From Eukaryota sp. TZLM1-RC (taxonomy: Eukaryota > Protista > Metamonada: BaSk clade), in NCBI GenBank assembly GCA_040285825.1, contig JAUPSS010000004.1, positions 4,493,784 to 4,557,783 on the forward strand: a stretch of 64,000 nucleotides of DNA. Reading direction: 5' to 3'. Both the position numbers and the translations under genes were made by a program. The notes under the pieces are model-generated. The model was given only the letters and a program-made list of their open reading frames with translations, made no database searches and was not told the DNA's origin. Shown piece after piece: positions 20,549-59,679 of the stretch; position 1 is the stretch's first letter; every line of letters begins with the position of its first letter.

Positions 20549-23307
20549 ATGTCAGTCTCTCCTCGCCAGGACACTGACTCCAGCCAAATTTTTTACATTA
20601 GACAGATGCAACAGTACGACAGAGATGCCTTGAGCATATATACAACAACAGCAGGGACTGAAGAGTCAAATAAAGAAGAGGACTCGGGCCCGAGACCACC
20701 CTCCGCCCCTCCTCATGAGAAAGAAATGGAACCAGGCACGGAACCACCTCCCGCCTCTTCCAAATCAAAAACAATGGAACCAGGCACGGAACCACCTCCC
20801 GCCTCTTCCATGTCCAACAAACCAGATAAGGTTTCAGGAACGGGACCACCCCCCTCCTCACCTAAAGAAAATGTTGGGTTAAGCTCGGATACTTCGTCTG
20901 CCCTAAAGGACTACGAAGAACTCCAGTCCGTTTTAGAAGAAATGGACGACGATGAAAAAGAGCTTCGCCAACAGATAATGAAGGACGCGGAAGCTCACCT
21001 TGAACCAACAGATTACTGTCTGTTCGAGCAGCTCCCTCCCCTTTGGAAGCAAATATCAAAATCTGGTAGAAATGTGGGATTCCAGACTCTGGGCCATAAA
21101 GGGGACCCTAATAGAGTCTACGAATTCCCTCAAAATGAGAGAAGAGAACTCATTAACGCGTTGGACACTTTGAGTAGAGAGACCTATGGACGCGGGGCAG
21201 AACGCCGTCCTAGGATAACCGGTATGGATAGAGAGATCCATGTGATTCTGGCAAAACCTATCAAAGATAGGCCTGATTGGAAAGCCATTCATTTAGATCA
21301 GTTCGGGAGAAGGATCAGGTTCTTAGCCATCGAACGAAGGAGCAGAACCGATACCGACGACATCCTGGAAACCAAATTACCGGCATGGATGGACTCGTAC
21401 TTTGATACGATCATTCATAACTACTCAGAGGTAGAGGATGGGGCTCCTACTTGTTTCAGAGAATACATGGAACAAGCAGACAGCACAAATCCAAGTAAGT
21501 TGGATCCCGTCAGTGACTTCTTTGACGCGGACGCCCTAAATAATATACTCACGGAACGTTCAAGCGTATCCACATTTAGGAGCCGCCCAAATAACTTCAT
21601 TCAGCAATTCGGGGAATCAACGACAAGGAAGAAGAAGTTCAGGTTCTTGGTCACGGGTGATCAATCAACAGAGCTCCACCAGAGACCTAAACTTCCTATA
21701 ATTGCCCCCATTATATCTGAAAAAGAGCAACCGGTACAAGTCTGTTCCATTGACGTACTCCCTGATCACATCCCGACAGTAGATGTGACAGAACGAACAA
21801 ACAGACCTACCAGAGTGGTTCAGGGACCATCAAGTCCCTCCCAACCTATGCTCACTAGCGCATCAGAAGACGAAGTCGAGTTGAGAGGACCTAGTTTAGA
21901 TGAAACACCTCCTCCTCAACCCCTCGTAGAAGAGTTACTTCTGAGGAGCCTCCCCGTTTGGAAGACCTCCAAGCTTCTAGAAACATTTTGGATATGAGTA
22001 TAGCAAGTAGTCTTCAGAGACATGTGGACTCTCAGCCTAGGTCAGCTGAATATAAAGCCCCTCACCTATCTGAGAAAGACCCTCTCAACAAGATGTCTCT
22101 CGTCTCCTTCCTCCTCAAATTCCAAACATGGGACAAATACGGACGCAAGATAGCCAATCGAAGCTTTCAAGCCCCTGGTCAATCTGATTGGTCTCGTGCT
22201 ATGTTGATAGCAACCCAAATATTTGGTGAAGGAAAGACCCAGATTACCCCTGAGTTGTTATCATCACTCCCATCTCACATCAGAGAAGAAATAGACAGGG
22301 ACATGAAACAGCCACTCTTAAGGATCGACCCAGAACTGACGAAACGTTTGGGACCTCCTATCCATCATTATGGCTTATTCAGAAGTATGATGATAAGTAC
22401 TTGTCCATCCGGCTTATCAAGCATGGTCGACCCCCATCTCATCTGTAGATGGCAAGGCCAAGGACTTCTAAGACCGGACTTCTCAGACGCTGACTTAATG
22501 GTTTTTCTGCTACGCAGGACACAATTTACCTCATATCACGAGGCTTGCTCTGCCCTAGCAAAACGATGTATAAATTGGAGAAACATCCACAACAAAGTAG
22601 ATGCGGACAACGAATTTGGTAGGTTCGTCGAAGATTTTGGAGACGTCCTGAGGATGACCACTTATATGGTTGATCACTCCATATCTGCATCAATTAGGGG
22701 AAGCAGCGGTTTAATAACCCTCTCACCCGCCCTTATTGCAGAATATTTTCTCTTGGGTATAGATAATTTTGCCATTACCAAGGAGCTAGCAAGCCATTGG
22801 ACAAGAGAAGATCTATGGGACCCTTCAACAGGTACAACTTTGTTAGACCTGATTTCGACCACCAGGAGACACTTTTTAGCTTGGTGCCAAACAACAGGAA
22901 ATAGGCACACTATGGAACTTTTGAGAAAACAAGCTGAAAGAGAAGAAGACATCCCATTAGGCCTTTCGACCATGAGAACGTTCTCTAGAGGAGCAACCCC
23001 ATCTGGTCCAGGTACTAAACGTCGCTCGGGAGGCGGATCCAAAGGAACTCCCCAAAACAAATATGTCCCAAAAAGACATGAACGAGAGGGATCTAAGTTC
23101 TGTACATTCTGTAACGTCACCGAAGGAAATAATCCTATCGGTCACACGGTTTTCGAATGCAAAGACCCCCGTTGTACCAGGAGCAAGGTACCAAAAGAAT
23201 TGAGGTTCAAGATCGGTGAGGCTGATCAGCCTGCGAGAAGTGGCAGCGTAGTTAGAGGCCGAGGTGGCCGTGGTAGACGTATTTCTAGGTTTAGAGGTAG
23301 GGGCTGA
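20549..23307 (+). CDS. gag: Gag-like region of family B (ORFs 20549-21997 and 21958-23307, split by a 1-nt frameshift)
   Basis: Pro/Ser-rich N-terminus with MEPGTEPPPASS repeats, zinc knuckle CTFC-x10-H-x4-C and an RG-rich tail. Confidence 0.75.
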
Positions 23308-26300
23308 GGTGGCCATTTTAGAGGACATAAAGGCAGAGGTCAATATAGACCTATTTATTACATAAACACACAAGAGGATACATCATCAACATCATCCCCT
23401 TCTGAGAACGTGTCAGCTAGTTCGAGCATGACCTCTCACAGACGGATTGACCGTTTCAGCAACAGGGTCAGAAACACTGGAAACTTTCCCAATCGGAAAC
23501 AAATCAACGCAATCAATCATAATCAATCAATTGCCGATTTCGGAAACCCAGTCAACAACTCCCCAACAGCTCAACAATTCTTACTAAATCCTCTACAATT
23601 CCACAAACCCAGCTCTGATATCAACAGTATTTTTGGAATAAATTCTACGGTTAGTGAGAACCACATCAGATCCCAGCGTTCTCCATTTCTAAGATTGGAG
23701 ATTTTAATAAATAATATAAAGATGATTGCAACTATTGATTCGGCAGCGTTTTGTTCGGTTATAACAGAAGATTTGGCTAACAAATGCAACATGTCAATTA
23801 ATAGAGATGATACAATTGAGTTCTTACCAGCCAATAACGTATCAAGTAAATCGCTAGGGAGTGCAAATGGTATTCTGTCGTTCAACGTAGGAAGCATTGC
23901 GCACCAGGTACATTATAGACATACTCTTCCCATAATCCCGGGTTCGAACAAATTATTAATAGGGATAGACATGTTAAAAACACTTGGGCTTCAGACGGAT
24001 GATGGTCTTTTCCTTAGATTAGACAAAGAACACCGCACTTTGTTAAATGCAGAATCTGAATTCGACTCAAGAATCGCTCAACATTCGATTGGGACCTTAG
24101 ATAACCAATCATCGAGTCCTTCCGATTTTGAGGAGCAGTTAACTAGATCTGGTTGTGAGATAAAATTAGATGATGATAATAATAAATTAAAATTAACGAG
24201 TCTACTAAGAATTTTCAGCGATGTTTTTAGTGAAACTCCAAACAGAAAAGGAATCGATTGTAAACCTCTAACAATCCCCTTTAGAGACGAGAATGCTATA
24301 GTACATAAACCTGCTAGACGATTAAATCCCAGCAAAATGGAAATAGCAAACAAAATATTTGATGAACTGATTGAAATGGGCTATGCAGTTGAATCTAATT
24401 ATAAATTCAGCTCTCCTATTGTCTTAGTTATATATCCTGATGGCAAGAAACCCAGGCTAACTGGAGACTTTAGCGGTAAAGATGGTGTTAATGCCCACAC
24501 GATTTCAGTAGAGCCTAATCTACCTAGGATTAGTGATATTTTAGAGTTTTTAAGTAGAGCAGATTACATAGCCACGCTTGATTTACCAAAAGCTTTCTGG
24601 CAAATGAATGTAGCTGAGAAGGACATTGAGAAAACATCAATCTCAATCCCTGGAAGGTCAATTATGTTTAAAAGAGCTTGCTTCGGATTAAAGAACATTC
24701 CAGCAGTATTTCAAAATGTAATGATGGAAATATTCCAAATTGATGGCGTTTTCATATATATCGATGATATCATAATAGTTGGAACGACTTTCGATGAATT
24801 CTATAAGAGATTACAAAGAGTCCTCCAATGCGCCAGAAATAGACGTGTAAATATAGGTTTACGTAAATGTAAATTCGTAACATCCAAACACCCTATTGAT
24901 ATTTTAGGAAGCACCTTCCATGGTAAAACCAGATTTATTAGTAAGAAAAAAATCGAAGCCTTGATGAGAATCCCTAGACCAAAATCAGTGAAAGAAGTTC
25001 GCTCATTGGTAGGATCCATCAATTATATAAGAGATTGGCTTCCAGGTATTTCCGAATTAATAGCTCCAATTAATGAGTTAATTAAAGGAAAACCTAGAGT
25101 AATAAAATGGACCAACGAGCATGACGATTATCTTAAACAAATAAAAGATTTAATAATTAATCACATGCCCCTTGAATTACCAGCTCCGGGCAAGCGCGTA
25201 CTAATAAGTACCGACGCATCAGATGTAGCAGTTGGAGGCGTTATTTGGCAAGAAATTGAACCATACTCCCCTGCAGGAACCCCACTGAATAAAAGAAACG
25301 TGAAACCTTTGTCGTTCTATAGTAGATTACTTACAGAAACACAAAGGAAATGGTCCACTTTACAGAAAGAATTATATGCAATTCTTCTGATTTTAACTGA
25401 AAGTTGTTTAGAAAGCTACCTTTTGACTAGACATCTAACAATTTTCACCGATCACAAAAACATTGCATTCCTGGCCACAGCCCCAGAGAAAAATAGAATT
25501 TGTAAAGAGATGGCTGCCGATACTATCTGAATTCGACTTTGATATAGTCCATGAACCAGGTGAAGATAACCACTGGGCAGATATGCTATCGAGGAATATT
25601 GATTTAGATCAAAATGAGGAAACTCCTTCTATATGTAGTATAAATATACCAGATACTTTACTTTCGAATTACGAGATACCTCCTATAGACGATGATTCTG
25701 ATTCGGACTTCGAAGACATCCCATCAATTTCATCCCTAAGTAGACACCAGGACCTACCTATTTTTTCTTCTTGGTTCTCTAAAATAAGATCTGATCAACA
25801 AATAGCCAAAAATAATAATGACCCTCTATTTGAGAATGCAATTCTAGATGAAAATACTCAAATTTGGAAAAACAATAAAAATAAAATTTTAATTCCAAAA
25901 AGCCTCAGAAAACAGGCACTATTATTAATTCATGGATTGGTTCAATCAGGCCACCCCAGCAAAAACGACAGTCTACATAAACTGTCCAAAAGCGACTTTT
26001 TCTGGCCTAATATGAGAAAGGACCTCATAAACCACATCAAAAGATGCCCAACTTGTCAAAAAACGGCACCAGTTAAAAGAACAAAAACACCTTCCACAGG
26101 TTCCCTTTGGGCAGATCGTCCTTTTGCCAGACTAAATGTTGACACAATTGGACCTCTGAATACTGATAGTGATGGTAATAAATACTTATTAGTATTTGTA
26201 GATTCTTTTACTGGATATTCAATTTTAGTCCCTCTGAAGGAACTCAATGCCTTAGAGACCGCAGACGCTTTGATTTGGAACGTTTGCGCAATTTTTGGCA

Positions 26301-27256
26301 TACCTATGTTAATTCATAGTGATAATGGTCCTGAGTTCGCCAATGAGACTTTTAAGATAGTGTGTAATAGACTAGCTATTGAGATGAGTAACTCAATACC
26401 CCACTACTCTGAAAGTAATGGACTCGTAGAGCGAAAACATAGAGACGTTCTACAATGCTTGAGGAAATTATTAATAGATTTTAATGATTATGGAAATTGG
26501 TCTACTTATGTACCCATATCCCAACTATTAATAAATTCCACTAAAAGCAGAAAGACAGGTTTTACACCTTACGAACTAATGTTTGGATCTTCGATTAGTC
26601 CAAGATCGGACCCTGCAAACATATTAGGAAACTTATCAAAATTTGATTCCAATATACCTTTATTAGACGATACTAAAATGAAAAATACTCGTCTGCAAGA
26701 AAAAAGGGAAGAAGCAGAGCGTCATCAATCATTAAATACTCCGATTTCAGTAGACAATACTAATTCGCGTTCTATAGTATTTAATATTGGTGACTATGTC
26801 CTACGTAAAACCAAACAGAATAATAAATTACATGGATCTTGGAACGGACCCTTTTTAGTAATAGACCATCCTTCCAACTCCACTTTATTATTGAAGAATC
26901 TTATCACTGGCAGTGAATTAAAGGCTGCTAAGAAAGATTGCAAAATCTATAACGCAGATAATCCTCAGGATATCGAATTTCTAAAGGCAGTCGCAGCAGG
27001 CGATGCTGAGAAACATGTTATAGAGAAAATCCTCTCAGAATATAATTCTGACTCAGGTAGTTTCTGTACTGTTCAATGGTTTGGCGGTGAGACAACAGAA
27101 GAGCCTCTCCATTCAGTTAAACATTCAGAAGCTTACAAGTTATTCAGTAGGAATAACAAGAAAGTTGGAAAACGTACTACTAGTCAACATAAAAGTACCT
27201 CCAATAACTCTACGCCTTACAAGAGGCCTAGACGCAGTACTAGAATTAGGAAGTGA
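23308..27256 (+). CDS. pol: Pol of family B: protease, RT, RNase H, integrase, chromodomain-like tail (1-nt frameshift near 25500)
   Basis: IDSAA protease; LDLPKAFWQ, FGLKN, YIDD RT; TDASD/ELYA/TDHKN RNase H; HHCC, DTIGP, SDNG, VERKH integrase; WNGPF motif; HVIEKIL...TVQWFG...TEEP chromodomain-like end. Confidence 0.92.
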
Positions 27257-28655: not shown

Positions 28656-29171
28656 TTGCTAAAATGTGCTCATCACCCTGTCGGTTTAAAACCACTGTTT
28701 AATGAATTAAATTTCAGTTTGAGCCAAAAACGAGGTGACATTCAATGTGCTTGGTACGATGGAACCGAACTAATAATCAATTATACCACCATATCTCCGT
28801 GGAAAAAGAGTTTTAATTCTGACATTCAACATTTACTTAAAGTTGCAGAACATTCCAAGAAATCAAAATACGAAGTTCTTCTTCACCGTCTCAATCGAAC
28901 AAGAGGTAGAAACATCATATTTGTTCCAATTGCTTTATCAATTTTTGGTACCATTGGAAGTGAAGGTTTTCATTTTTTGGATGATTTAGAGAAAATTGTC
29001 AAAGAAAGTGGTCGCACATTTGATTTTCTGATTTGGAAGAACAGAATCGTATTTTCGTTATTTAAAGCTCTTCCTCGTTATATTAACTCCGTTTTGAATA
29101 ACATTACCGAATTTTATAACAATCGAGTTGCTATACAAGTGAATAGCGAAAATCTCCCGTCATTTAGTTGA
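28656..29171 (+). pseudogene. Non-LTR retrotransposon RLE-domain fragment
   Basis: KRGDI...AEHSKKSKY...FVPIALSIFG...IWKNRIVFSLFK pattern shared with the other RLE fragments in the window. Confidence 0.7.
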
Positions 29172-29260: not shown

Positions 29261-29807
29261 GGGTGATGTTATACGTGTGCAAATTTGTGTTATCCGTGTG
29301 CACTTGTTATCCGTGTGCAAATTTGTGTTATCCGTGTGCACTTGTTATCCGTGTGCAAATTTGTGTTATCCGTGTGCATCCTTAAAGAGAACGAACTGAC
29401 TATTACTTTTTTGCTTTATCAACGTACGTTGAAATATTTGGAGTAAGCCCTACTGCCATTATTACAGATCGTGAACTGGCGCTAATGAACTCCATTAAAA
29501 TGCTCTTTCCTCAAAGCTTAAACATCTTATGCATGTGGCACATCAACCGAAACATCCAAGTTTTCAAATCTGCAACAAGAGAAGATTTATGGGATGAATT
29601 TTGGAGAGACTATCAGCATTTCATTAAGTTTAAGATTGATGAAGTAACTCATTTGGGCAATTATACGACAGAGAAGGTCACTATCGTTCTACATGTCCTA
29701 ATAGATAGATGCAATAAAGGAAGATATAATTTTTGTAAGTTTGGAGAGGTGAAGTCGAAAGTTTATGCACACAGATAACACAAATTTGCACACGTATAAC
29801 ATTTTCG
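29261..29807 (+). mobile_element. Non-autonomous MULE (Mutator-like) element with TIRs and 9-bp TSD
   Basis: TSD ATTTTTCTT at 29252-29260 and 29808-29816. TIR core tgttatacgtgtgcaaatttgtgttatc at both ends. Internal IITDRELALMNSIKMLFP...LCMWHINRN is a typical MULE transposase segment. Confidence 0.9.
29267..29379. repeat. Three ~38-bp units (six tgttatccgtgtgca-type motifs) in the left MULE end
   Basis: Alternating 21-bp and 17-bp subunits read directly from the sequence. Confidence 0.9.
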
Positions 29808-34244: not shown

Positions 34245-35209
34245 AAACTGAGAATGACGAAGAGTTTAGTTGAAGTATGGGAAAATTGGGATGTTAGTTT
34301 GTGTTATCAGGTGTCAATCTCTAAAGTTTAGACTTGCTTTTAACCTAATTTTGTGTAGTTGAAAGGAAGGTAATGAACAAGTTTGACCAATGTTGGGTCA
34401 TCAAAAAAGCAATCTTCTTATTGGAAGCAATTGGGACACCCTTTTTCAAAATATTAGTTTGGTTGAATTTTAGGTTGAATACAAATCCCTTTTTTTCCCT
34501 TCCCTCCCTAATCCCTTTTTTGTGTTTCTGACCTATTGAGATAAACACTTGCTCAAAACTCTGGTCTTGATGCTGAAGAGACTATTATCAACTTGCAAGA
34601 AGAAGCCGAAGAGGTTGTTATTTCTTCTCAATTATTGTTGTGTGATGAAATTATAGCTGCTGGTTTGTTACCATATGATCATTCTGTTAACTTTAGGAAG
34701 AAGCTTGTCCATGAAAGCTCAACAACAAGGATAGTTGGATTTGTATTGCATAGAAATAAATATGGCTTAATTATTTGATTTTAATGTTTTAGCATTGACA
34801 TGCTGTCACAACAGTGTAAATATGTGAATCTTTTGTTGGCTGTTTTAATGTTTTTTCATTAATAGAGGATTTATAATTGCTGTTCATAAAAGGATGGTTG
34901 TGTGTTCATCAAAACAACTGAAGCTTCATGATAACATACATACAGAAATCTTTTCACTGTTTCGCAGAACTCAATTATTATTAACAAACTTCAATCATTA
35001 TTGATAGTATCATTTCTGTGGAATTGTCCCGGATACATCACAATTGAAGCAAGTAGCTAATCAATAATAACATGAAATCTCAGTAGATGATGAACACTAA
35101 CTACCTTTATGCCACTTGACAAACCTTATCCACACGTGTCGTATAGCATTTCGACTTTTGGTTTTCTCCAGGGTTCATTTAGGATAGATAAATTGATTGA
35201 ATTTCTAAA

Positions 35210-35612
35210 AAATCTTAGGAAAACGGTTTGAAAGTGCTGCTTTGGGGGTAGTTGTTGCCTAATTGGTAGATTTGTTCAGACCAAATCCATAGCAATCACC
35301 ACAAGCAGTGAGTGTCAATGTATGATGAACACCTACACTACAAGAAACAATGTTAGAGAAGAAGGGTAACTGGAAATTCTTTCTACCAGTAGCATGAGGA
35401 GGAAAATATCGGGAGAGAACACCAGGTGTTGGAGATGAGAATAAAGAAACAGAAGGTGCAACAGAGCCAATAAGGTTTATTCGTTTTGTGCGAGACCAGA
35501 GAATTGAGTTTCCTTTAGATAAGGCAAGAAAATCGTGAAGAGGGAGGAAGAATACACCTAGTTTATGAAGTGAAGGGAAAGTGTGGGAATAGTGAAAACC
35601 TCCCAAAACCAA
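35210..35612 (-). pseudogene. RCC1-repeat-like fragment
   Basis: IVSCSVGVHHTLTLTACGDCYGFGLN, continuing as YQLG after a 1-nt shift. No ATG start. Confidence 0.45.
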
Positions 35613-35706
35613 GTTGAGGGTTAAAAACCTCCCAGAACAGGCAACCAGAAGTCGAAAATAGGTGACAAGTGTAAAATTTGATAGATGAGCTCTTTATTCT
35701 CACTAC

Positions 35707-37667
35707 ATGTCAGACACCCACTCTGTGTCACGTGTATTCACTCGTTCTTGTGCACTTAACTCGCTGCTGACCCCTGCAGCGGTGCAACAAATTCGGACTG
35801 ACCTTCCTGTGGTCACCGAGATTTGTCATGAAGCTTCTTTATTACTTCAATCTTTTCTTCTAAATTTTCCGTTGGCATCTAGAGCTTTAGTGGAACAGGA
35901 TGTATGGTATCTGTTTATGACCGTCATCACCACTGGTTCTTTTCCTAAGCCTTCCACATCTAAAGGCCAACGCCAATTACTCCATATCTTTTACAATGGA
36001 TTTCCTGAATGCCTGAATGCCCACAAGACAGGTCTCTTGTTTCTGTGTGGGAAAATTCTTTAGTGCCTTACAGAAATTCATTCAATCTTTTCCTCAATGA
36101 TTGGCTGCAGTCCCAGAACTGTAATTTTATCAATAGAAAAGGGCTTTCTCCTTACCTTGCTTGTCGGGCTCGTCAATTGGCCTCCAACGTTAAGACACGT
36201 TTACCTAAAATTTGTCAATCCTGGACAAAAAACTTTATTCGTGCTCATTGTAGAGCCCTGGATAAAACAAATGTCTTTGCAAATAATATTCTTTCACTTT
36301 TGCCAGATGAACCACTAGCCCAACCCGAGGAAGTAGTAGTTGATTCTGTTCTTGAATACCTCATCAATTTCAATTTGAATAATTCAAGAGAAAGATTTTT
36401 TTTTATTGAATGCATGTAAGTTTATCTTGAATCTCTTTCAAAGATTTCCTACCACTGCCTCCCTACTGTCCTCACATGATAAAATCACTTTTTCATCAAA
36501 GGAAATTAGTGAGCTTTTTCTCTTCAATCTTAAAATTTCACAATACTTATTCACTTTCTTTTCTCATATGCATTGCTGAAAGAAATTTAGAATAATACCT
36601 TTAGCTTCTCATAAAGGTTCTAAATTTATTGAGGTACCTTCACAAATTTTCCACTCTGTGAAAAAATTTCCAATTATTGAAGGATCATCTTCCAAAACAA
36701 AGTTTATCAAAAATACATGTCTGAAACGAATATTCAAACAATGTCCTTACCAAAAATTCAATATCAACAGAAAAAGTTTGAAAAATAGATTTAACAAAAT
36801 TTTATTGAAAACTAATGGTAATGAACTGCTTTTGACCTTTGAAGGTAAAAATAATGACTCAGAAAACACAGATGAGCTGGATGAACCACCGAAAAAGAAA
36901 AGAAGATCAAAAAATGAAATGAAAAGTGACCCTAATGCCAACAAAACCAGAGAAACACAGTTGAAGGGTACTAAAAAATGCCCCGTCGAAGACGTAGACA
37001 TCCAGTCGAAATTTTACCTGAAAGCCCCCTTATCGGCGTTGATCTTGGCCAATCTAGATTATGTGGTTACTTCTTAAATGATAATCAATGTGGAGTTATC
37101 CCTTGTCCAACTGGCAGAAGATACATGACAAAACCTTCACCCAGTAAACACTCTCCCAACCAATATTCCGTTCAAAATTTCAACCAATATTTGAACCATT
37201 GGAATTTGGTCAGGAGGAAAGTGTATTTGGAAAGTAATCGCCAGAAATGGAAAATAATTAAATTTGATAACCGCAGACAAAAAGAAAGACGGTTCAGAGA
37301 GAGTCTCAACAAATTTCAAAGGCTGGCTGGACATCCTGAAAAACTCTATCTTGCTGTGGGTTCTGCTAATTTCCCTTCTCATTGCCGAAAAGTCAATCGA
37401 TATGGATCAGCAAGGGCTTTCAGAAAATGGTTGTGTTATCAAAAGGACGTGAAGCACTTGTCAACCAGTGAATTTAATACAAGCAAAATGTCAAGTTGTT
37501 GCATGGCCGAGAATATTCAAGCAGGCTCATGGCAGATGCGTATTTGTACTGAGTGTCAAATAGTATATGACAGAGATATTTCCGCTGCAAAAAATATTCA
37601 AATTAAGAAGAAAGCGGAATTGTGGCCGGAAAGATACATTTGCCCAGATGCTCTGCTGAGGAGATGA
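35707..37667 (+). pseudogene. Fanzor1/TnpB-like RNA-guided RuvC endonuclease, ~650 codons, four lesions
   Basis: RuvC-I IGVDLG (D at 37041), Gly at the canonical RuvC-II position (LAVGSANF), alternative Glu in SEFNTSK (37470), SSCC...CTEC zinc finger and RuvC-III YDRDISAAKNI (D at 37575). Upstream Fanzor1-like segments KKFRIIPL...KFIEV and LKTNG. Lesions: 8-bp duplication at 36004-36019, T9 slip at about 36400, TGA at 36577, 1-nt shift at about 37010. Confidence 0.85.
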
Positions 37668-37760
37668 ATAGGGAACGTGAGCATACAGAAACAAAAACTT
37701 TTGAGACCGATCTACAAATACCTTAGTAGCATTTGGTAGATCCACTTAGATACATCAAGT
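37640..37760 (+). ncRNA. Candidate Fanzor omegaRNA scaffold / element right end
   Basis: Overlaps and follows the nuclease stop codon. Inverted repeats ATGCTC(37648)..GAGCAT(37684) and GATCTACAAAT(37709)..ATTTGGTAGATC(37742). Boundaries are inferred. Confidence 0.4.
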
Positions 37761-38529
37761 CGCGAGGCTTTGTTCTGTGAATGCAGTAGGTGTATTTAAG
37801 TGAGGTAGCCCATTGATGAAGATCATGATTGTCTTTGTCAAATGATGCTACATGTCTCTTACAGCCTGTGAGTAGACATTGAGAAAGTTGAAAACAGGAG
37901 TGAATTTCACAGGGGAATGCATGATAAGTGAAATTCACAGTAGTTTGTTCACAAGCCAAGTCACCAATACATAAAACAAAATATATTTGGATCACCATGT
38001 TTTCTTAAGAAGTTTGAAAATTAAACATGGTACAAACATGAACCATGGCTACACTCGCAATGTGTGGATTGTGTTCCTGGAGATGGAACGCAAAGAGCTC
38101 TGAAACAATTAGTGTTGTAGGCACCCACTTAGCATATCAACTACCGTATCTCCATTTACCTGTTTAGGGAGTGCTTCTACACATCAACACCATTTGACGA
38201 GACATTCTGAATTTAAAAAGGAAGTCGCCAATGCACCACACGCTTCCATGGAGCCGACATCTCAGAGCTGCGATCTTGAATATGTCTGAATTGTAGGTTT
38301 TGAGTGTTCCTTGATACAGGCCTCCTCCTTTCCCCACAACCAACGTTGAGGTCCAACTGCCATTCGACAGTGTACCACAACGACTCAGTCACATCCAAGA
38401 CAACTCGTCGTCGATGACAGAGAACCACAGATGACAGTATATTACAGAGGCTTCCACTACCGAGGCGGATCCATCACAGATCAGCACTTATATAGGTATG
38501 CGAAAGTGAAGAAATTGAGACCTGGAAAA

Positions 38530-39110
38530 TGCAACTCCATTGCGTGGGAAAATTATTCCTCATTGTTTTCATTCACATTGAAGACGGTTGTTTGAAATGA
38601 TCGATCCACTCTGTTGAGTGTTCCTCCTCGTGTACTACAATTTGAATTCCGTGATTCATAATGCACTGATAAATATATGGTATGATTTGTGTCAAAACGG
38701 AAAAGCATCAATAACATCAACTATGAATAACAATTCTTCAATTTTGTGTCTCAATTTTCCAATAAGTGACAAGTTGACAAGTGACAAAATAAACTTCCAT
38801 ATAATGGGACGAAATTCATTGATCCATGATTCTCTTTACGAAATCTTGAACTGCTGGTTTTCTCACTATACTTCTTTGATTTGATAAAAAGGCAATGGTG
38901 ATCTGATGATGATGGCAAATTGAATTCAAAAATGGAATAAAGAAAATCAAATCTCCTCATTGTTGTTTCTTGAATTATTTTGTGGAAGTTAATCAAAGAA
39001 TCCCCTACTAATGATAGTTGTCCATATTTTGAAAATGGGACAATGATGAAATAGAGTTACTTATTTCTAACAGCATTTACTTCTTCAATATTATTAGCTT
39101 CTTCTCCATC
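38530..39110 (-). pseudogene. Degenerate non-LTR RLE fragment
   Basis: FDFLYSIFEFNLPSS and flanks are homologous to 43114-43430 and 59700-59960. Confidence 0.55.
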
Positions 39111-39322: not shown

Positions 39323-42253
39323 ATGCCACCTACACATCCTTGCATAGCCAATGATGGAATTCCTGAACAAGAAACAGTTACTGTCATGTCTGCAAAGCAA
39401 ATCAAACAATTCGTACGTCCCCGATTTGAAGCAAACCCTGAAGAATTCTATCCCACCACCACCATGACAGATCATGGCTTCTCACGTGCTCAATGTGGTT
39501 CTTGTAAGCACTATTATTGGAAACATTCCGATAAAATGACCTGTTGTGGAGACAGTAATTGTGTCGGCGAATATCAGTTCATCGGGACTGGTGTAGGAAA
39601 GGGTGCTAACGGGACCAAGATAACCTATCAAGAAGCTTGGGCAGGCTATGAGAGAATCTTCACCACCAATCCTGTTCCCTGCACTGCCATCGATCGCTTC
39701 CCAGTCGTCGCCAGGTGGAGATCTGATATTGACTTTGTTGCTGCTGGAATCTTTTGCTTCCAACCTTACTGTGTCACTGGTGAACTCGAACCCCCTGCCA
39801 ACCCACTTATATGTCCTCAATTCTGTCTTCGTTTCAATGACCTTGACTCTATTGGTCTCTCTGGTCGCCATCATTCAGGATTTGTCATGATTGGTAACCA
39901 AGTCTTCAACTACCCTGATAACTTTGTCTATTTCAAGGAAGAAGTGGTGGCCTATCATTTAAGATGGCTTACTGAGGAGCTGGGTATTGACCTTGATGAC
40001 GTGACGTTGATTGAAGATGTTTGGTCTGGTGGAGGTAATCTGGGACCCTGCATTGAGATTTTCGTCAAGGGACTAGAAGTTGGTAACTTGGTTTTTATGG
40101 AGTATAGATACGGTCAGGATGGTTCCCTTCATAAGTTAGATGTTCAAGTTGTTGATGTTGGTATTGGGCTTGAACGAATTCCCTGGCTTATTAATGGTTC
40201 TCTCACCTCCTACCTCGATGTTTACCCCTCTACGTTGAATCTACTATCCTCCATGGTCAAGGTTGACCCTATTAACGAATCCTGGAAGAAATACGCTCCA
40301 TATTCTTGTTTGCTCAACATTGATGAGTGTGAGGATGTTGATAAAGCTTATGAATCAGTAGCACAGAGAATGGGATTGGAGAAGGAAGAATTGATAAAGG
40401 AAATCATGCCTGTCAGAGATCTTTATATTGTTTGTGATCACACGAGAACGGTTTTAATGGCCATTCAGGATGGTTGTCTTCCTTCTAGTGTTGGCGGTGG
40501 TTATAACTTGCGTAATCTTCTAAGAAGGGTATTTTCCACTTTGCGAAAAAGGAATTGGTGGGATTTAGTTGGTTTGGAGGGCTTGTTTAAGTTATTCGAT
40601 TCACATAGAGACGAATTAGCAGGTATTTACGGACCTTTTGGTCAATATTCTTCATTTAATTCTATTATTGAAATTGAATATGAAAGATGGAGAGCGTCTG
40701 ACGATGAAGCAAAGAAGAAGCTATCTGCAGTATTGAAGAAAACACCACAGTTAACATTGAATCATTGGATTCAACTAGTAACTTCGCAAGGGCTTTCTCC
40801 TGACAAAATTGCAGAAATCTCTAAACAAGAAGTTCCTTCCAATCTCTATTATGAAATTGCTGAAAGACAAGATAAAGTAGCTAAAAAGGAACTTCAACAA
40901 CTCTATGAAACTGCTTCTTTTCCAGCAACTGATGAATTGTTTTATGAACTGGAAAGCCAAGACGAATGGGAAGCAAAGGTCGTTGGAATTCTTGAGAATG
41001 CCGACCCTCATCATACAGGAAAGCGAAACGTGATACTTCTCAATCAAACCTGTATTTACCCTACTTCTGGGGGTCAAGATCACGATACTGGAAGACTTTT
41101 ATTTGATAATGGAGTTGAATTGTTTGTTCAAGATGCTATCAGGGTTGGAAAAGTGGTTTTGCACGTAACAAGCGAAGAAATTCCTGACAGTATCACGGTT
41201 GGGGCAACTGTGAATGGGGTTCTTGACCGTCATCGACGTAATCAACTACGTCAGCACCACACCGCAACTCACATCATTCATGCTGCTTGTGTTGAGACCT
41301 TGGGTCCTCATGTTTGGCAGAATGGAGCCAAAAAGACTGAGGAAATTGCTCATTTGGATATTACTCATTACAGATCACTTACTAGAAGGGAAGAATTAAA
41401 TATTGAAATTAGGGCTAATGAGATTGTTAATTCCTGTATTCCAATTAATATAAGTAACCGGTCAAAGAAAGAAGCTGAAGCTCAGCACGGCTTCTCTTTA
41501 TACCAAGGTGGTGTAGTCCCAGGAAACACCCTCAGAGTGGTTGACATTAATGGAGTTGACCAAGAAGCTTGTTGTGGAACTCACTGTCAGAATACAGGTG
41601 AGGTTGGTACTATTAGGTTGACACGATCTAATAGAATTTCTGATGGAGTGGTTCGTTTATATTTCGTTTCGGGAGCAAAAGGTAGGGAATACACTGCTAA
41701 CCAAGCTCAACGTGAATACGAACTGTGTCAGACAGTTGCAATGCAACCTGAAGATCTAAAGAGCTCAGTTGCCAAATATTTCGAAGGTTACAAGCGTTTT
41801 GACAAGTTTGCAGACTCTTTTGTTCGTTTAGTATTGAATCATTTGACAGTACCCTCTGTTGATCAAGGTAATGTGTTTGTTCGGTTCGATCCTCCTAACC
41901 CATCTATGTTTTCAATGCAAGTACCTCCTTTTTCTGAAAAACTTAAGGAATTAGACAGATCTGTTGTTTTTGTAGGTTCTACTTTTATTTATGGTTTAAT
42001 TGGAAATTCAGAATTGGTTGAAGCTGATAAACTTAAAGAAATGGCAGTTTCCCAGGCAGAGAAATTGGGAGTAACTAATGCAAAGAAAGCTTTCAGTTCG
42101 CGAAATAGAATTCAATGGACAATTAAGGAAGGGAAAAAAAGGGTAAAGAAGGTTGTAGAGGGTGTCTTGGAAGTTTCCTTGCCCACATTGTCTAATACTG
42201 CTCCTTTTGTTGACTATCTCTCTTCCAAAGGATTTACTGAATTTTTGCCTTAA
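39323..42253 (+). CDS. alaS: Alanyl-tRNA synthetase, archaeal type
   Basis: N-terminal CGSC...CGD..C zinc-ribbon, RFPVVARWR, PPANPL, CLRFNDLD, WSGGGNLGP, VDVGIGLER and DHTRT. Editing domain HTATH...CCGTHC. Confidence 0.96.
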   Translation: MPPTHPCIANDGIPEQETVTVMSAKQIKQFVRPRFEANPEEFYPTTTMTDHGFSRAQCGSCKHYYWKHSDKMTCCGDSNCVGEYQFIGTGVGKGANGTKITYQEAWAGYERIFTTNPVPCTAIDRFPVVARWRSDIDFVAAGIFCFQPYCVTGELEPPANPLICPQFCLRFNDLDSIGLSGRHHSGFVMIGNQVFNYPDNFVYFKEEVVAYHLRWLTEELGIDLDDVTLIEDVWSGGGNLGPCIEIFVKGLEVGNLVFMEYRYGQDGSLHKLDVQVVDVGIGLERIPWLINGSLTSYLDVYPSTLNLLSSMVKVDPINESWKKYAPYSCLLNIDECEDVDKAYESVAQRMGLEKEELIKEIMPVRDLYIVCDHTRTVLMAIQDGCLPSSVGGGYNLRNLLRRVFSTLRKRNWWDLVGLEGLFKLFDSHRDELAGIYGPFGQYSSFNSIIEIEYERWRASDDEAKKKLSAVLKKTPQLTLNHWIQLVTSQGLSPDKIAEISKQEVPSNLYYEIAERQDKVAKKELQQLYETASFPATDELFYELESQDEWEAKVVGILENADPHHTGKRNVILLNQTCIYPTSGGQDHDTGRLLFDNGVELFVQDAIRVGKVVLHVTSEEIPDSITVGATVNGVLDRHRRNQLRQHHTATHIIHAACVETLGPHVWQNGAKKTEEIAHLDITHYRSLTRREELNIEIRANEIVNSCIPINISNRSKKEAEAQHGFSLYQGGVVPGNTLRVVDINGVDQEACCGTHCQNTGEVGTIRLTRSNRISDGVVRLYFVSGAKGREYTANQAQREYELCQTVAMQPEDLKSSVAKYFEGYKRFDKFADSFVRLVLNHLTVPSVDQGNVFVRFDPPNPSMFSMQVPPFSEKLKELDRSVVFVGSTFIYGLIGNSELVEADKLKEMAVSQAEKLGVTNAKKAFSSRNRIQWTIKEGKKRVKKVVEGVLEVSLPTLSNTAPFVDYLSSKGFTEFLP

Positions 42254-43113: not shown

Positions 43114-44490
43114 TTAAACATCTAAATCTAGGTCATAAACCTGACCTGGAGACAGGGTACTTTGGCATTGAAGAAAGTGGAGGCAAAAGAGAGAGATTTT
43201 CGCTAATTCAATTGAAAAAACGAGGCAATCTATTAATGATGGCAAATTGAATTCGAAAGCGCCATAAAAAGATATCAAATCTTTTCGTTGTTTTTTTTCT
43301 TGAACCATTATTTGGAAATCATTCAAACAAGTTCCTGCTTCTACTTATAATTTTCCGTCTATAGAAAATTGGAAAGCATTAAGAACAAGTGGTCTATTTC
43401 TACCAGCATTAGCTTCTTTGTTATCTTTGTCATTTTTTTATGTTTTTCTTTTGCTTTAAATTCAACAGCATCACATGATTAAGTTTTCTTCTTTAAACCA
43501 AAGTTTCATTTGCAACATTACAGGAGACAAAGTCAACATCAGCTTCAGAGTTCTCAATCCAATCACAGTATACTTCACCTCTATCATCAGAACCAAAATT
43601 ATTCAATGACAATGTTTCTTTCAGCAGAGGCTCTTTGATACACGAAATTCTTGCATTTTGTACCATATTGAAAACAGTGTCTCTAACAGCATCATGTAAT
43701 GAAGAACGATAGGTTATCAATTTAGAGCAATTCAGAGCATGGCGCAAAGTGAGTTGAGGTGAATTCAAACAAATACATTTTTCTTTTGATAATAATTGAT
43801 TAATGGGAAAATTCAAATATAATCTCATTTTTGTTACAAACGCTTCATCATTAGCACACAGTCCAAAACTTCGTGGTACAATTGTCAGAAACAGTGAAGA
43901 AACTGGTGACTGATTTTCACAAACACCCTTTTCCGATAACAATGAGTGAAGATCTTGATTTAGAACAGCCGATCTGCTTATAATTTTATAGAGATCATCT
44001 TCATACATTCCAGCCAGTTGTTTCGGTAGTTTTTGAAGAGTATATTTTAAATTTAAATAATTCTTGTCGGGTATTTTCCAATTATTTTTTTATTTGTTAT
44101 TTGATAAATAAATATTCAAGCAAAAACTAGAATTCAATAATCTCAATACACGCATCAACATCATCAACACTCTTAAGTGCGCAATTTTCATACTCTATTC
44201 CAAATTATAACAGTGCTTTAGTTATCATTTCTGGAATTGCTTTAAGTATACGAAAAACAATTCTAATGTGCCAGAAATTAAACTTCAATTTTTTTCCTGT
44301 TCTTTCTTTATATAACTTCGAAAAAAAATTTAATACCAGAAATCCCAATATTACCACAAAATGCAACAACCAATGGAACTAACAGATAAGTTAAATGCTC
44401 AACACACCCAAGCTTTGATAAAGGCTCTTTGTACTTTTTGATTTTGCTCATTTCTGCAAAGCAAAGTGGAGTTTCATCTGTTTTAGCAAA
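43114..44490 (-). mobile_element. Degenerate non-LTR retrotransposon RLE fragments (two)
   Basis: CIC...HALNC...RSSLHDAVRD...KEPLL...DRGE...VDF at 43493-44008. A second 3' fragment (KIKKYKEPL...VPLVVAFCGNIG) lies at about 44150-44490. Confidence 0.7.
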
Positions 44491-44505
44491 ATCAACAGAA
44501 TTGTT

Positions 44506-46565
44506 AAAAAAGCTGGTAAATTTTTGTCGCCAATGCAATTTGGTATTCAAACAATTGATGGAGCCTCAGTCGCTGCTCTGACATCAGACTTGTTTTTTAA
44601 CGGCACAGAAAACAATTTTATTTTCAATTTAGATTTTAGCAACGCTTTTAATAGTGTAAGAAGAAAAGCAATTTATGAAGTAATTCAAAAACATTTTCTT
44701 GAACTATCAAGTTGTTTCTATTTGTTTTACGGTAAACCCAGTGAATTAGTAAATGATGTTTTTTCTCTCAAGTCTTCATCAGGAGTAAAACAAGGGGATC
44801 CTTTAGACCCATTATTATTTCGCATAGCAATCCAAGAATCATTGATTGTTATTAATGAAAAATACCCTTCTCTCCAAATTGTAGGTTACAGGGTTGACAT
44901 CTCCCTTATCGGTCCTTTTAGTGTTGTCCAAAAAACTTCAAATGAAATTGCTGAACAATATGAAATCATTGGTTTTCACTTGAACCCAAAAAAAATGTTC
45001 ATTAATTGGTAATGCTTTCACAGAGTTTAAAATTAATAATTGTAAAATTCCTTTTACTAATTATTCACAAGAAGCTTTTCGTTTTCTAGGATGTTGGTTA
45101 GGAAATGTTGATGAAATTACTAAAAATCTTAACGAAATTGTTGCAAAACTTGGCAATGAGCTTCAATTAATTTCTGAATTAGAAATTGAAAAAACATATT
45201 AAATTTTTGATTTTAAAAATTTGTTACTCCGGAAAAATTACTGACTTATTGAGGTCGACAGCACCGTCATTGTCTATCGATTTTTGCCGATCATTTAATC
45301 AACTTCGTGCAACTTTCTTTGCTTCCCCATTAGAAGTGAATCCTGAGCTAATTCGGGCTCACTTGTTCTCTTCTTCACAATTCGGTGGTGTTGGTTTTAC
45401 CAAATCCTCTATTTTTTGTCAAGCAGCTTTTGTTGGTGGTGGCAAAAATTTGATTTTTGAATTTTTGATCTATTCCCTGAAAATATTCATTTGCTTAGTC
45501 CATCATTTTCAAAATATTTGCATGACCTTGATGTTGCCATTAATAAAATTGCACCACAAACTTGGTGTCAATGTTCTCCCGACTCAGTTCAAGATATTCC
45601 TCCATGAAATTTAGTTAATTTAAGGTATTGTGTGAAGAAGCTTCAACAAAAACTGACAGTAATATTTGAAAGGTTGGATTATGAAGTACGTCTTGGTAGG
45701 GCCAAGCAAAAACTCCCGCTTTTGCAAATTTTTTACTGGATGTTTGTGATAGTTCTGCCTCTTGTTTAATTAATCAAGTACCAAGAATTTATGGTTTTTT
45801 TCTCAATGACTCTTGCTTTTTATTATCTATGCGTCTTCGATCTTTTATATGGCCTGATTATTTTCCTCATGGATTAATTTGTAAATGTGGAAAGACTGTC
45901 ACTCCAACCCATTTATTCAATTGTAATCGATGTATTACTTCTAGATCAAAAGTGCATGATGCAGTTCGTGATCAGCTTTATTGTATGTTTAAATCCTACA
46001 ACATTGAATCATTTTTAGAACCTTTGCTTTCAAATTTGGCTGATGAATCTGACAGAAATTCTTTTGGTGACAGCCGTGGTGATGTGCTAGTTCCCGGACT
46101 TGATGGATCAATGATCATTATTGATGTCAGATCTACTGATGTATCAATCAGCTCAAATGAAAAACTGGCACAATCTTATAACTCACCTTTACGAAGAGCC
46201 GAAGAAGCGAAAATTATCAAGTACAAGAAATAATCAATAACTTAAATTCCAACTCACATACTCAATACATTCTTTGTCCTTTTGCTTTTTCCTTATTTGG
46301 AACCTTGGGTAAAACTGCGTTATCTTTTTTGGACGATTTCTCATCTATTGTCAAAAATAGAACTCGAAGAATATTTGACCAAACGTTTTGGCAAAACAGA
46401 ATTGTATTTTATATTTTTAAGGGAATGTATAGATTTGTCTCTAGCTCGTTGTTATCACTAGGAAATTTTTATGAAGAAAAAGCTGTAGGTAAGTTTTCTA
46501 TAGAAGAGGTGGAGTATGCGGAGATTGATTTGTAAATTTTTTATAATTTTGTTTGAATAAAATTA
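44506..46565 (+). mobile_element. Degenerate non-LTR retrotransposon with RT and RLE domains (CRE-like)
   Basis: QFGI..DG, LDFSNAFNS, GVKQGDPL, degenerate YxDD (YRVD), LNPKK and FLG. Downstream CKCG..HLFNC, HDAVRD, RGDV, IIDV and FWQNRIVF. Several frameshifts. Confidence 0.85.
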
Positions 46566-50387: not shown

Positions 50388-51287
50388 TAAAGCTTGGATT
50401 TTGATGTTAGACTTGGCTTGGCCAAGAAAAAGAATCCCGCTTTTGCAAATCTTTTACAAGATATGTGTGACAGTACTTCTTCTGCCTTAGTAACAACAAT
50501 TCCACAAGTTTATGGTACTCTCTTATCCGATTCTGCTTGGGCTCTGAATATGAGATTTCGTTCCTTTATCTGGCCTGATAATTTACCTCATAATTTAATT
50601 TGTAAATGTTCTCGAGAAATTACAACTACTCATTTGTTAAATTGTAAACATTTTATTACTTTTAGAAGCAAGGTTCATGATGCTGTAAGAGATTAGTTAT
50701 ATTGTATGTGTAAATCTCATAGAATTGAATCCTTCTTGGAACCTCTGTTGTCAAATCTGTTTGATGCTGAAAATGATTTTCATAAGAATAATAGAGGTGA
50801 TGTCATATTACCTGGATTAGATGGAAGCTTCATTTTATTGGATGTAATGTCTGTTGATCCTTGTAATGCCTCAAATGAAAGGCTTGTTAATTCTGAAATT
50901 CATAATCCCCTTTCAAATGCTGAAAATTTTAAATTCAAAAAATACAATGAACCTTTGTCCAAATTGGCCAGTCTACAGCATGCAAAATACAATTTGTATC
51001 CATTTGTATTTTCCCTTTTTGGTTCACTTGCACCAACTGCTTTACGTTTTTTGGATGATTTTGAAATGATTGTAAAGAGAAGAACTGGCAGAAATTTCAA
51101 CAGATTGTTTTGGCAAAATAGAATTGTGTTTTCTATTTTTAAGGGGATGTTGAAGATGGTTTCTGATGCTTTGCTTTCTCTTGGATCTCACTATGAGAGA
51201 GTTGCATCTAGTGTTTTTGTTTTGGGAGAGATGGATTTTTTAGATGTTGATTTATAGGTTTAGAATAAAATTAAATTTAATTAAAAA
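50388..51287 (+). mobile_element. 5'-truncated non-LTR retrotransposon (RLE end) with TSD
   Basis: 12-bp TSD AAATAACCTGTG at 50376-50387 and 51288-51299, with an A-run tail. CKC..HLLNC..HDAVRD*..RGDV..LLDV..FWQNRIVF, one premature stop. Confidence 0.9.
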
Positions 51288-51901: not shown

Positions 51902-52315
51902 AAATAATAGTGACTGTCTGTTTGTTAGTTTTGTTAAATGTTATGGCAATAAAAAGCTCAATACTACAAAAGTTAATTGATATAGACATTCTGTCCCAAA
52001 AGAAAGCAGGTTGATGTAAGACGTATAAGGTCTCTGCTTATGAAGTTGTTGTGATGACATCATATCTCTTCTGTTACAAAAGAAGCAAGGTTGATCTTAT
52101 TGTGTACAAAACGAACTGATATAGAATTACAGACGGGTTTAGCCCTACTTCTTTGTTAATAAAGGCTACGTATAACTTGTGAAAGAGCGTTCTGTGGGGT
52201 GAGTGAAAACCCAGTGAGTAAAAATAGTTTGTACTGACAACCCACTGAAAAAGCGATCCTCAGACTAAATAACACTATTTATTATATTATCCTGGCGAGT
52301 CATACACAATGAACT

Positions 52316-53527
52316 CACCACAAATCTACTCCACCTGTTCCTTCTTCGGAAGTTCCTACAAGAAAATTATTCATATCCCTCCAACATCTGGCCAGACTTC
52401 TCAGCAAGGTCCCGTTGTTTTTTCTACTCTTACAGCTTGGCAAGTGCTTAATGTTACCCAGCCTAACAGTTATCAACCTCCAACTCAGCCGCAAGAATCA
52501 GATTCTCCCTTCGTTTCTGTTCAGCAAAGGACTGAAGCTCAAACTTTAGTTCTTAATGTTGGCATTGAATTAATGCAAGGAGATCCTGCCTCGATTCCTC
52601 CTAATGAGCTCATTGCTGCTCCATTCCCATATTGGAGTCCAGAAGTAGTCAATGACCACGGCGTAAGGATCCGTAGAAGAATAGGCCCACACTTCCCTAC
52701 TGAAGAATTAGATAACCCTCCACCCAATTTTCTTCAGCGGGATATTGTTGGAGGTTTCAGAATTCCTCGAGAAGGAGTACGGAGAATTTTCGCTGGTGAT
52801 GAGCTGAATTTCTTCCTCAACCGCTGCAATCCGTGTCCTTTCCCTAGGTTTAGCCCTGGGTATAACGGATATCTTGATATTTCTATCAACCGAAGCCAAC
52901 CCTTTCTCTCCTGGCCAATTGGTCAAACGAGCTTCGGCTTCCACAGCTAAATTATATGGTAACTATCAAGGACTTTTCAAAGTTATATATACACCATCTC
53001 CCTCCACATTTGACATTAAGAATTTGTCTACTGGCATGGTAGTCAAAGCCAGTGTGAAGCACCTTCAACCTTGGCATTCCAGTTAACCCGCAATTGATGA
53101 TTTTCACTCATGGGTCGCAGCCAATGACGCCGAAGAACAGAAAGTTTTCAGTCAGGATGGTGGCCATTACCAAGTCCAATGGCCTGACAATCATATTAGC
53201 ACTGAGCTGGTTTCGACTATTCAGAACACCTCTGCTTACAAAGAATTCTCCAAGTCTATATCTGATACTCACTCTCATCCTTCCCGCCGTAAACGACGTT
53301 CTAATAAAATTAACAATACTGTAAATTTTACTCCTATCAGGCCTCAACGCTCGGAAAGAAGAAAGGGCGGTGTTAGCCTTGGATAATATTTGTTTTAATA
53401 GTTTAATTGTAGTTCATTGTACAAATGCGCCCATGTGCTTAAGTTGAGGGAAATCCTCATTCCCTCGCAATAAACCTCTTTACATATCTTATAGGTACAT
53501 GTCTAGTCATAACCCCGCAGATCATCA
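52316..53527 (+). mobile_element. Internally deleted family-A LTR element remnant with 3' LTR (53371-53527)
   Basis: 52316-52880 matches the gag region at ~10190-10770, then jumps to the integrase tail matching ~15795-16160. PPT gaaagaagaaagggcgg precedes TGTTAGCCTTGG...GATCATCA. Confidence 0.85.
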
Positions 53528-59029: not shown

Positions 59030-59679
59030 AGTTGATTATGGTGGGATTCAAACGAAAGTACCTACTACTGCCTACACTGCATAATTCCTCCTTTTCAAAA
59101 TCCTTCTCCCTTTTTCTCTCTATTTGAATGGTTTCTGCACCAGGGTTAGATTAAACACTGGGTTTGTTGAAGATAATCACGTATGGTTGTGCTCTTCATT
59201 TTGTTATATACACTTGTTGAACAAAACTTTCGTTGCATGTCATTTGTCACTATACAAGCTTGATGAATAAGCTTAAAAAATCGCTGTTTGTTAATCATAA
59301 ATTAAAATTGTCCATATTACAACCCAATTCTATCACAATATTTGTCACACTGGTTTTCTTCATGCAAATCAATAAAATTCATTTTTTTTTCATTTGCACC
59401 AAAGTATTTTGTTTTATTCCGAATGTGGAAAAGTCACACAGAACTAAATAACGAATATCGATTTGTACAATGTTTTGTTAGATTTGACAAAATAGAAAAG
59501 TAGTCATAGACAGAGAAACATAAGCAAAGATCGTTTGTGCTCATCTCAATTGAAGGAATTTCCATTTTTTGTTCTAGGCTGTTACTTCTTAGTGAAGTAG
59601 TTATCAAATTGCTAAAATGCATAATAGATCTCAATAAAGCAATATTTTATTGATCTTGCACATTTAACAAAATAAACTC

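Follow-up and report, generated by a model that had tools for sequence, protein, structure and literature searches.

The 64,000 nt window (the whole stretch of DNA analysed) carries one copy, in damaged form, of a mobile element that is present many times over and contains a gene for a Fanzor-type nuclease, a eukaryotic RNA-guided enzyme. The gene is broken in this copy (nt 35707–37667, plus strand), which is itself dead and no longer yields protein, and its family frame of 651 codons was established from the reading frames, a consensus of sibling copies and an intact sibling. The family is a new, divergent member of the already known and widespread Fanzor family, and is too diverged for detection by profiles of the solved Fanzors.

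The host, Eukaryota sp. TZLM1-RC, belongs to Skoliomonas (metamonads, BaSk clade) and is an anaerobic protist kept in culture; its genome is a Nanopore (R9.4) assembly with Illumina correction (10.1101/2023.05.03.539051). Both the 229 aa ORF at the 3′ end of the gene (piece 5, below) and the neighbouring ALG12 gene are present in that assembly, and the metamonad host claimed in an earlier, sequence-only reading of this DNA is borne out. A protein search with piece 5 returned 22 proteins of 78–99% identity, all from Eukaryota sp. TZLM1-RC. The sequence cluster containing the window copy has 82 members, including KAL0223451.1, and about 50 more Fanzor-family fragments occur in further clusters, so the family numbers at least several dozen copies. 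KAL0223451.1 (P0086), annotated at 651 aa in the same genome, is an intact sibling of the kind that had been predicted. It aligns gap-free to the sibling consensus at 98.5% identity and retains every catalytic residue; as an annotated model it may hide a predicted intron. Relatives were absent from the IMG/VR, JGI metagenome and phage records searched, protein searches (one of them exhaustive, with the C-terminal piece) gave no relative beyond Skoliomonas, and a literature search found no paper that names Fanzor together with metamonads.

Reconstruction of the Reading Frame

Three-frame translation of the region gives four ORFs and a segment at nt 36397–36576, with three frame switches and one in-frame TGA (nt 36577). 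A majority consensus of ten near-full copies (the window copy and nine siblings) is 1956 nt long and forms a single open frame of 651 codons with no internal stop. Compared with this consensus, the window copy has 21 substitutions, a stop at codon 289 and three indels (+5, +1 and −1 nt); all five of its pieces align collinearly and without gaps to P0086 at 95–99% identity. The sequence-only reading had joined four ORF pieces and an unlisted segment into one frame of about 650 codons by correcting four small lesions; the consensus and P0086 agree with that frame, the four lesions are found against the siblings, and the gene can be reconstructed as was proposed, the repaired or consensus frame being open across 651 codons.

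Piece 1 (nt 35707–36003, residues 1–99; this and the following features are on the plus strand unless stated otherwise) is 99% identical to P0086 and 47% identical to P0061 of the sister isolate TZLM3-RCL (E = 1e-20), and by analogy would comprise the N-terminal WED strand and the beginning of the helical REC region. It ends at break 1, an 8 nt tandem duplication (nt 36004–36019; net +5 nt relative to siblings), followed by piece 2 (nt 36012–36395, residues 101–228), a probable helical region that matches P0086. Break 2 is a run of nine T (nt 36396–36404), one more than in siblings. Piece 3 (nt 36397–36576, residues 229–288), the short segment outside the ORF list, also matches P0086 and is closed by break 3, a TGA (nt 36577–36579) where siblings have TGG (Trp289). 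Piece 4 (nt 36580–36975, residues 290–421) leads into break 4, a run of six A (nt 36973–36978) in place of the seven in the consensus, and piece 5 (nt 36978–37667, residues 423–651) holds the RuvC and TNB (zinc) regions. Basic runs at residues 394 (KKKRR, in piece 4) and 425 look like nuclear localisation signals. The N-terminal pieces, as had been claimed, are part of the same gene, since they align both to P0086 and to P0061, which is 31% identical to the window family from end to end.

Majority short-read contigs from three public runs differ from the window at the identical four positions; these contigs are collapsed across copies and define the state of the family, not that of this particular copy. 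The loss in the A-run was found again in 4 of the 10 assembled copies, and siblings L005 and L010 are broken in homopolymers only. Assembly errors could explain both homopolymer changes (T-run and A-run). Neither the +5 duplication nor the TGG to TGA change is of the homopolymer kind; both are private to the window copy and in all likelihood are real mutations. It is highly improbable that the breaks are small introns, or all of them assembly errors, and that the window copy is really intact. Two of the breaks can be bracketed by GT..AG pairs at a suitable distance, and two breaks do fall in homopolymers of a Nanopore R9.4 assembly, but the siblings differ by indels of 1–5 nt with no insert of intron size, which rules out introns behind the frame changes, and the duplication and the stop are unlike homopolymer errors. 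Two other placements were also ruled out: a slip at the C-run at nt 37025 for break 4, where siblings point to the A-run, and a slip at nt 36049–36053 for break 1, where they point to nt 36004–36011.

Active-Site Motifs and Family Assignment

Members of the Fanzor/TnpB superfamily share the C-terminal motif D-x(125–275)-[TS][TS]xx-zinc finger-x(5–50)-RD (PMC3627910). In Fanzors the RuvC domain is rearranged, the canonical RuvC-II Glu being lost (Gly or Pro in its place) and an alternative Glu lying before the zinc site (PMC10530073, PMC10711439). The spacing taken as diagnostic was an alternative Glu about 40–45 residues past the Gly/Pro and immediately ahead of a zinc finger of four cysteines, the first of them seven residues past that Glu.

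The RuvC-I Asp444 of the window family (nt 37041–37043) lies in GVDLG. Gly550 (AVGSA, nt 37359–37361), at the inferred site of the canonical RuvC-II Glu, is Gly in all RCL relatives, and is followed after 37 residues by the alternative catalytic Glu587 (SEFNTSK, nt 37470–37472), likewise conserved in these relatives. The zinc-site cysteines are residues 596, 597, 612 and 615 (SSCC...CTEC, nt 37497–37556), with Ser594 replacing the first canonical Cys, and the RuvC-III Asp622 (RDISAA) is at nt 37575–37577. The superfamily motif is fitted by D444, TS 590–591, the Cys cluster 596–615 and RD 621–622. The motifs are therefore those described from the sequence (IGVDLG, a Gly with an alternative Glu in SEFNTSK, a Cys cluster and RuvC-III), and the acidic triad D444, E587 and D622 is retained, as had been stated, and is kept in most siblings. 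Two positions deviate from the usual signatures. The RuvC-I motif, DPG 'near exclusively' in Fanzors (PMC10711439), is DLG here, and the zinc site has Ser-x-Cys-Cys, also seen in the RCL relatives, where CxxC is usual. These natural changes probe how strict the Fanzor active-site signature is.

The Pfam model Cas12f1-like_TNB matches piece 5 at 29.9 bits (gathering cut-off 26.3), and no other piece is recognisable alone by profile. With D444, G550, E587 and D622 in place, this match supports the earlier call of a TnpB-family nuclease with a Fanzor-type rearranged RuvC. NCBIfam TnpB models match far under cut-off and within the C-terminal ~60 aa, and neither sequence nor profile comparison reached a solved Fanzor at E < 10. 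Among PDB sequences, Cas12m and TranC match best, in the zinc region only (~60 residues). AlphaFold2 models from two shallow alignments reached pLDDT values of 38 and 32, and Foldseek with the better of them gave no meaningful match.

Relatives in TZLM3-RCL are, besides P0061, P0065 (34% identity) and P0054/P0069 (28% across the C-terminal half). Their RuvC-I motif is DPG in P0061 and P0065 and DPN in P0069; the DPG of the first two indicates that the DLG of the window family is a derived change. In the ESM Atlas, the neighbours of P0045 and of the Fanzor part of P0061 are DUF8286 and DUF8286+TNB clusters of 500–800 aa proteins from Mucoromycota, giant viruses and chlorophytes (scores 0.95–0.97, 182–201 shared features), all this being one source of evidence, protein-language-model features. 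These three groups correspond to the host range of Fanzor1. Fz1 proteins are 600–700 aa long (PMC11423790), a range that includes the 651 aa found here; they owe this size to an enlarged N-terminal half, and their WED/REC fold has a REC insertion of ~150 aa. The serine recombinase TnpA (IS607), which in Fanzor2/IS607 elements lies next to a compact protein, is absent from the called genes of the 11 sibling loci and from the window ORFs.

Four features underlie the label Fanzor1: the length of the protein, its rearranged RuvC, the missing IS607 recombinase and the language-model neighbours. The protein probably works like a Fanzor1 and, in view of its DLG, is filed as Fanzor1-like, membership in Fanzor1 itself being probable; the earlier assignment to Fanzor1 stands on those four features, and the DLG and Ser-x-Cys-Cys motifs deviate from it. 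It is quite unlikely that the protein represents a TnpB/Cas12-like or Fanzor2-derived lineage that was acquired independently and has a long N-terminus of its own, or that it is a binder without catalytic activity. DLG is a TnpB-type motif, the best PDB matches are Cas12m and TranC, and the first zinc ligand is missing; against this, the close TZLM3-RCL relatives have DPG and the identical alternative Glu, the PDB matches span ~60 residues of the zinc region, the Atlas neighbours are long eukaryotic and giant-virus proteins, and most siblings retain the three acidic residues.

The 3′ Region and Right End

Similarity between copies continues for 273 nt beyond the stop codon and ends sharply at nt 37940. 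The last ~250 nt (nt 37693–37940) form a conserved multi-stem region with several long stems (−79 kcal/mol, z −3.64) and, in the consensus, two GNRA-type tetraloops; there is no covariation because the copies are too alike, and an Rfam search of the region gave no match. It includes two end motifs, each an 11 nt palindrome followed by AG, that can pair with each other. The second (nt 37928–37940; CACAG, then T[A/T]) closes the element on the right. The first (nt 37900–37912) serves as the end in a stand-alone copy of the 3′ region without the gene (L008:5927–6146, minus strand), which stops at this motif, before TA, and resembles the ghost loci of SpuFz1. All 12 right ends examined read CA[C/T]AG, followed by T and then by A (eight ends) or T (four ends). 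The right flank (nt 37941–37960) differs between copies, and the 8 nt at its start may be a target duplication. By analogy with related TnpB-family systems, the 3′ region is a candidate omegaRNA scaffold and the variable flank the candidate guide. With the full-length KAL0223451.1, a bounded candidate omegaRNA and dozens of flanks, the guide boundary and TAM should be readable from the genome.

A TCACAA target motif beyond the right end, seen in the first three loci, was not upheld across the 12 ends. The next start codon on the same strand is 19, 37, 61, 75, 114, 199 and 252 nt away at seven ends and absent at five; since only 5 of 12 ends lie within 120 nt of such a start and the distance is not fixed, no targeting is claimed. 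Tight docking at host start codons was likewise not upheld and cannot be separated from gene density. One of the five ends that lack such a start, at L011:10737, directly adjoins the stop codon of a tubulin gene running the other way.

The Left Side, Co-Mobilised Genes and Target Duplications

The range nt 35707–37667 given in the sequence-only reading is right for the ORF and too short for the element, which spans at least nt 34450–37940. The left end is not common to the copies. A core starting near nt 35556 is shared by all full-length copies, and its part upstream of the gene (nt 35556–35706) is the probable promoter and leader. The subfamily of the window copy extends further, taking in a divergent gene with an MJ1316 domain (Pfam E = 1e-10) and, beyond it, the 3′ portion of a gene for a CCT/TCP-1 chaperonin (E = 8e-25). 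The co-mobilised MJ1316 gene, originally of 140 codons, is a remnant in the window (nt 35262–35558, minus strand), its start and first 31 codons being gone in a 148 nt deletion and a 30 nt deletion being present besides. The co-mobilised CCT fragment (nt 34543–34778), which from its motifs we take to be zeta-like, is internally deleted, and the left-most segment (nt 34450–34537) is common to sibling L005. Copies stop at differing left points and have differing internal deletions, one of which, in the window copy, sits at a 3 nt microhomology. The upstream DNA is different in other subfamilies. Across the copies it amounts to as much as 4.9 kb, in which the promoter, intergenic DNA, an antisense gene and, in L002, nested elements are found.

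Target duplications, in which the opening nucleotides of the right flank are repeated upstream, were found at 3 of 12 ends, L002 (11 nt), L004 (13 nt) and L008 (11 nt), against 0.3% of control flanks (nominal p = 5e-6; cross-locus control 1/132), and a clear duplication was not seen at the other nine. In L002 and L004 the upstream duplicate lies 26–45 nt from the left homology boundary and is followed by short, repetitive, templated-looking filler. The candidate left duplicate of the window copy (nt 34295–34302) is not significant alone, as 18% of control flanks reach 8 nt.

Two further features of the upstream DNA were noticed. The MJ1316 gene (RNA cyclic-end recognition) is full length in several copies (L004:3372–3794, L009:3205–3627) and ends in a small Cys/His-rich segment. 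At L006:6459–6548, a segment about 80% identical to the promoter of the Fanzor gene with its start codon (window nt 35624–35715) lies before an unrelated ORF of 108 codons.

Selection on the Copies

Substitutions were counted against the sibling consensus. Those private to one copy have an N/S ratio of 2.4 against a neutral 2.88 (p = 0.13; omega-like value 0.83), with 12 stops among them. For substitutions found in at least two copies the N/S is 0.86 against the same neutral value (p = 1e-9; omega-like value 0.30), and none of them is a stop; the two classes differ from each other (Fisher p = 7e-6). Copies decay neutrally after insertion, and the lineages that produce copies have kept a working protein. 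Selection on the source lineages, set against neutral decay of the copies, directly indicates that the carrier gains from the protein, and because the host is in culture, the long-standing question of what it gains, retention of filled sites or help in making new ones, becomes open to experiment.

Comparison with Known Fanzor1 Elements

The family resembles the Fanzor1 proteins SpuFz1, GtFz1 and PpFz1 (PMC10432273, PMC11423790) in its length (600–700 aa), long and probably helical N-terminal half, rearranged RuvC with an alternative Glu, zinc/TNB region, and conserved 3′ region that reaches the element end, with no IS607 recombinase. It differs in having DLG and Ser-x-Cys-Cys (not DPG and CxxC), in lacking terminal inverted repeats, in a candidate RNA of ~250 nt compared with 75–150 nt in the three solved Fz1s, and in being too diverged for an HMM match to them.

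The one-ended pattern resembles that of Fanzor1 elements of Chlamydomonas and Mucor. CRe-1, -2 and -3 of Chlamydomonas are non-autonomous, Helitron2-linked Fanzor1 elements (PMC3627910) that likewise keep their 3′ end intact, with a hairpin at a fixed place, are often truncated on the 5′ side or deleted internally, make target duplications of varying length (7–19 bp), have extra sequence at the 5′ junction and prefer a T-rich target. Unlike these, the present family shows no Helitron partner or asymmetric terminal repeats in the loci covered, and has an intron-less gene, captured host-gene cargo and a duplicated palindromic end motif. MCi-2 of Mucor circinelloides, an unclassified Fanzor1 element (PMC3627910), shares near-identical 3′ regions, subfamilies defined by the 5′ region, duplications of 11–12 bp and the lack of inverted repeats, whereas the family described here has no Crypton fragment and a shorter core (2.4 kb). 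Replitrons (PMC10288648) are similar in their copy-and-paste movement, short target preference, right-end hairpin and repeats, and variable duplications in one host, but here no Rep gene and no terminal direct repeat was seen, and the fuzzy side is the left, not the right.

Proposed Mode of Movement

The window copy is probably a decayed copy of a young, high-copy, non-autonomous Fanzor1-type DNA element that is retained and copied as follows. In intact copies the 3′ region would be transcribed into the flank, giving an omegaRNA. The variable tail of this RNA would lead the protein to the sequence of the flank where it adjoins a short motif, and so to the empty allele. Cutting of the empty allele would be followed by break repair, by which the element is kept or copied back. 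New insertions, about which we are less certain, would come from copying of the element from one end only, the right, by a transposase acting in trans, most likely of a HUH/rolling-circle (Helitron2 or Replitron) type. Copying would run leftwards for a variable distance, dragging along pieces of host genes, and the left junction would be sealed by host end-joining. The window copy may still supply omegaRNA.

No transposase was found beside the gene in the window or in any of the 11 sibling loci, in agreement with the earlier report that none is adjacent. Helitron1 elements have 5′-TC and CTRR-3′ ends, an A|T target and no duplication, whereas the ends here are CA[C/T]AG|T[A/T], with duplications at 3 of 12. 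Of the Helitron2 features (hairpins at both ends, asymmetric terminal repeats and a RepHel partner), the 3′ stem is present and a RepHel partner is absent from the fetched loci. A DDE cut-and-paste element does not fit, as the end motif is at the right end only and duplication lengths vary, and there is no poly(A) or simple-repeat 3′ tail of the kind left by non-LTR retro-copying.

Retro-copying in trans by non-LTR retrotransposons of the restriction-endonuclease type, with the transcript primed at its 3′ end, would be an alternative source of copies. Target-primed reverse transcription typically leaves a fixed 3′ end, 5′ truncation, duplications of variable length and junction filler, all of which this element shows, and retroelements of this type are everywhere in these loci. 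We consider this unlikely, given that a poly(A) tail is absent while local retroelements have A-rich tails, that the copies bring up to 4.9 kb of upstream DNA, promoter and antisense gene included, that no source flank is carried along beyond the scaffold end, and that the two alternative ends share one palindromic DNA motif.

A cis role of the Fanzor in new insertions was also weighed. There would then be no dedicated transposase, and the Fanzor would make or complete the target break that yields variable duplications, for example through a second-strand cut beside a HUH nick or through break-primed copying, and would do more than guard existing insertions. The lack of an adjacent transposase and the purifying selection on source lineages, in which copies with a working protein left more descendants, are in keeping with this, and variable duplications in Fanzor-bearing HUH elements have tentatively been put down to such a double cut (PMC10288648). 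Retention through cutting of the empty allele would yield the identical selection signal, however, and new targets are unlike the flanks of other copies beyond T[A/T], when guide-directed insertion would need likeness. Fanzors are also not known to be required for transposition. The cis role is unlikely; if true, it would make this a Fanzor-driven, gene-capturing element and answer what Fanzors do for their carriers.

Other Elements and Genes

TZLM3-RCL (GCA_040285805.1) carries a multi-copy element of 4.55 kb (L012:5470–10016 and L003:3481–8024, 96% identical) with one ORF of 1323 aa, P0061 (KAL0209630.1), and a right end merely ~45 nt past the stop codon. The protein comprises a 2A-like motif (DVEPNPG), an EXO1/XPG-family nuclease (XPG_N and XPG_I) and a complete Fanzor with DPG and an intact triad. 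A literature search found no paper on such a flap/exonuclease–Fanzor fusion, which is possibly more novel than the window finding. A third Fanzor family, also in TZLM3-RCL (P0054, P0069 and P0072–P0076), has seven full-length annotated copies of 592 aa with DPN at RuvC-I, and makes a good candidate for an active system.

Elsewhere in the window, a Ty3/Gypsy-like element (nt 20549–27256) has gag, protease, RT and integrase pieces in near-contiguous ORFs, and decayed copies of this type occur at about nt 13500–16300 and 52300–53400. Many 5′-truncated fragments of non-LTR retroelements, with a restriction-like endonuclease motif and A-rich tails, are found at nt 28656–29171, 43493–46233, 50706–51257 and 59600–61400. 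A short element (nt 29266–29802) has 37 nt inverted ends, and its 38 nt left end is triplicated. To the right of the Fanzor element is about 0.8 kb of unexplained DNA (nt 37960–38770), with a weak multi-copy signal at nt 38214–38430, and an alanyl-tRNA synthetase gene (nt 39323–42253; Pfam tRNA-synt_2c and tRNA_SAD) lies beyond it. The left end of the window (nt 1–1860) is a tandem repeat with a 780 nt period, its three copies being 95–96% alike.
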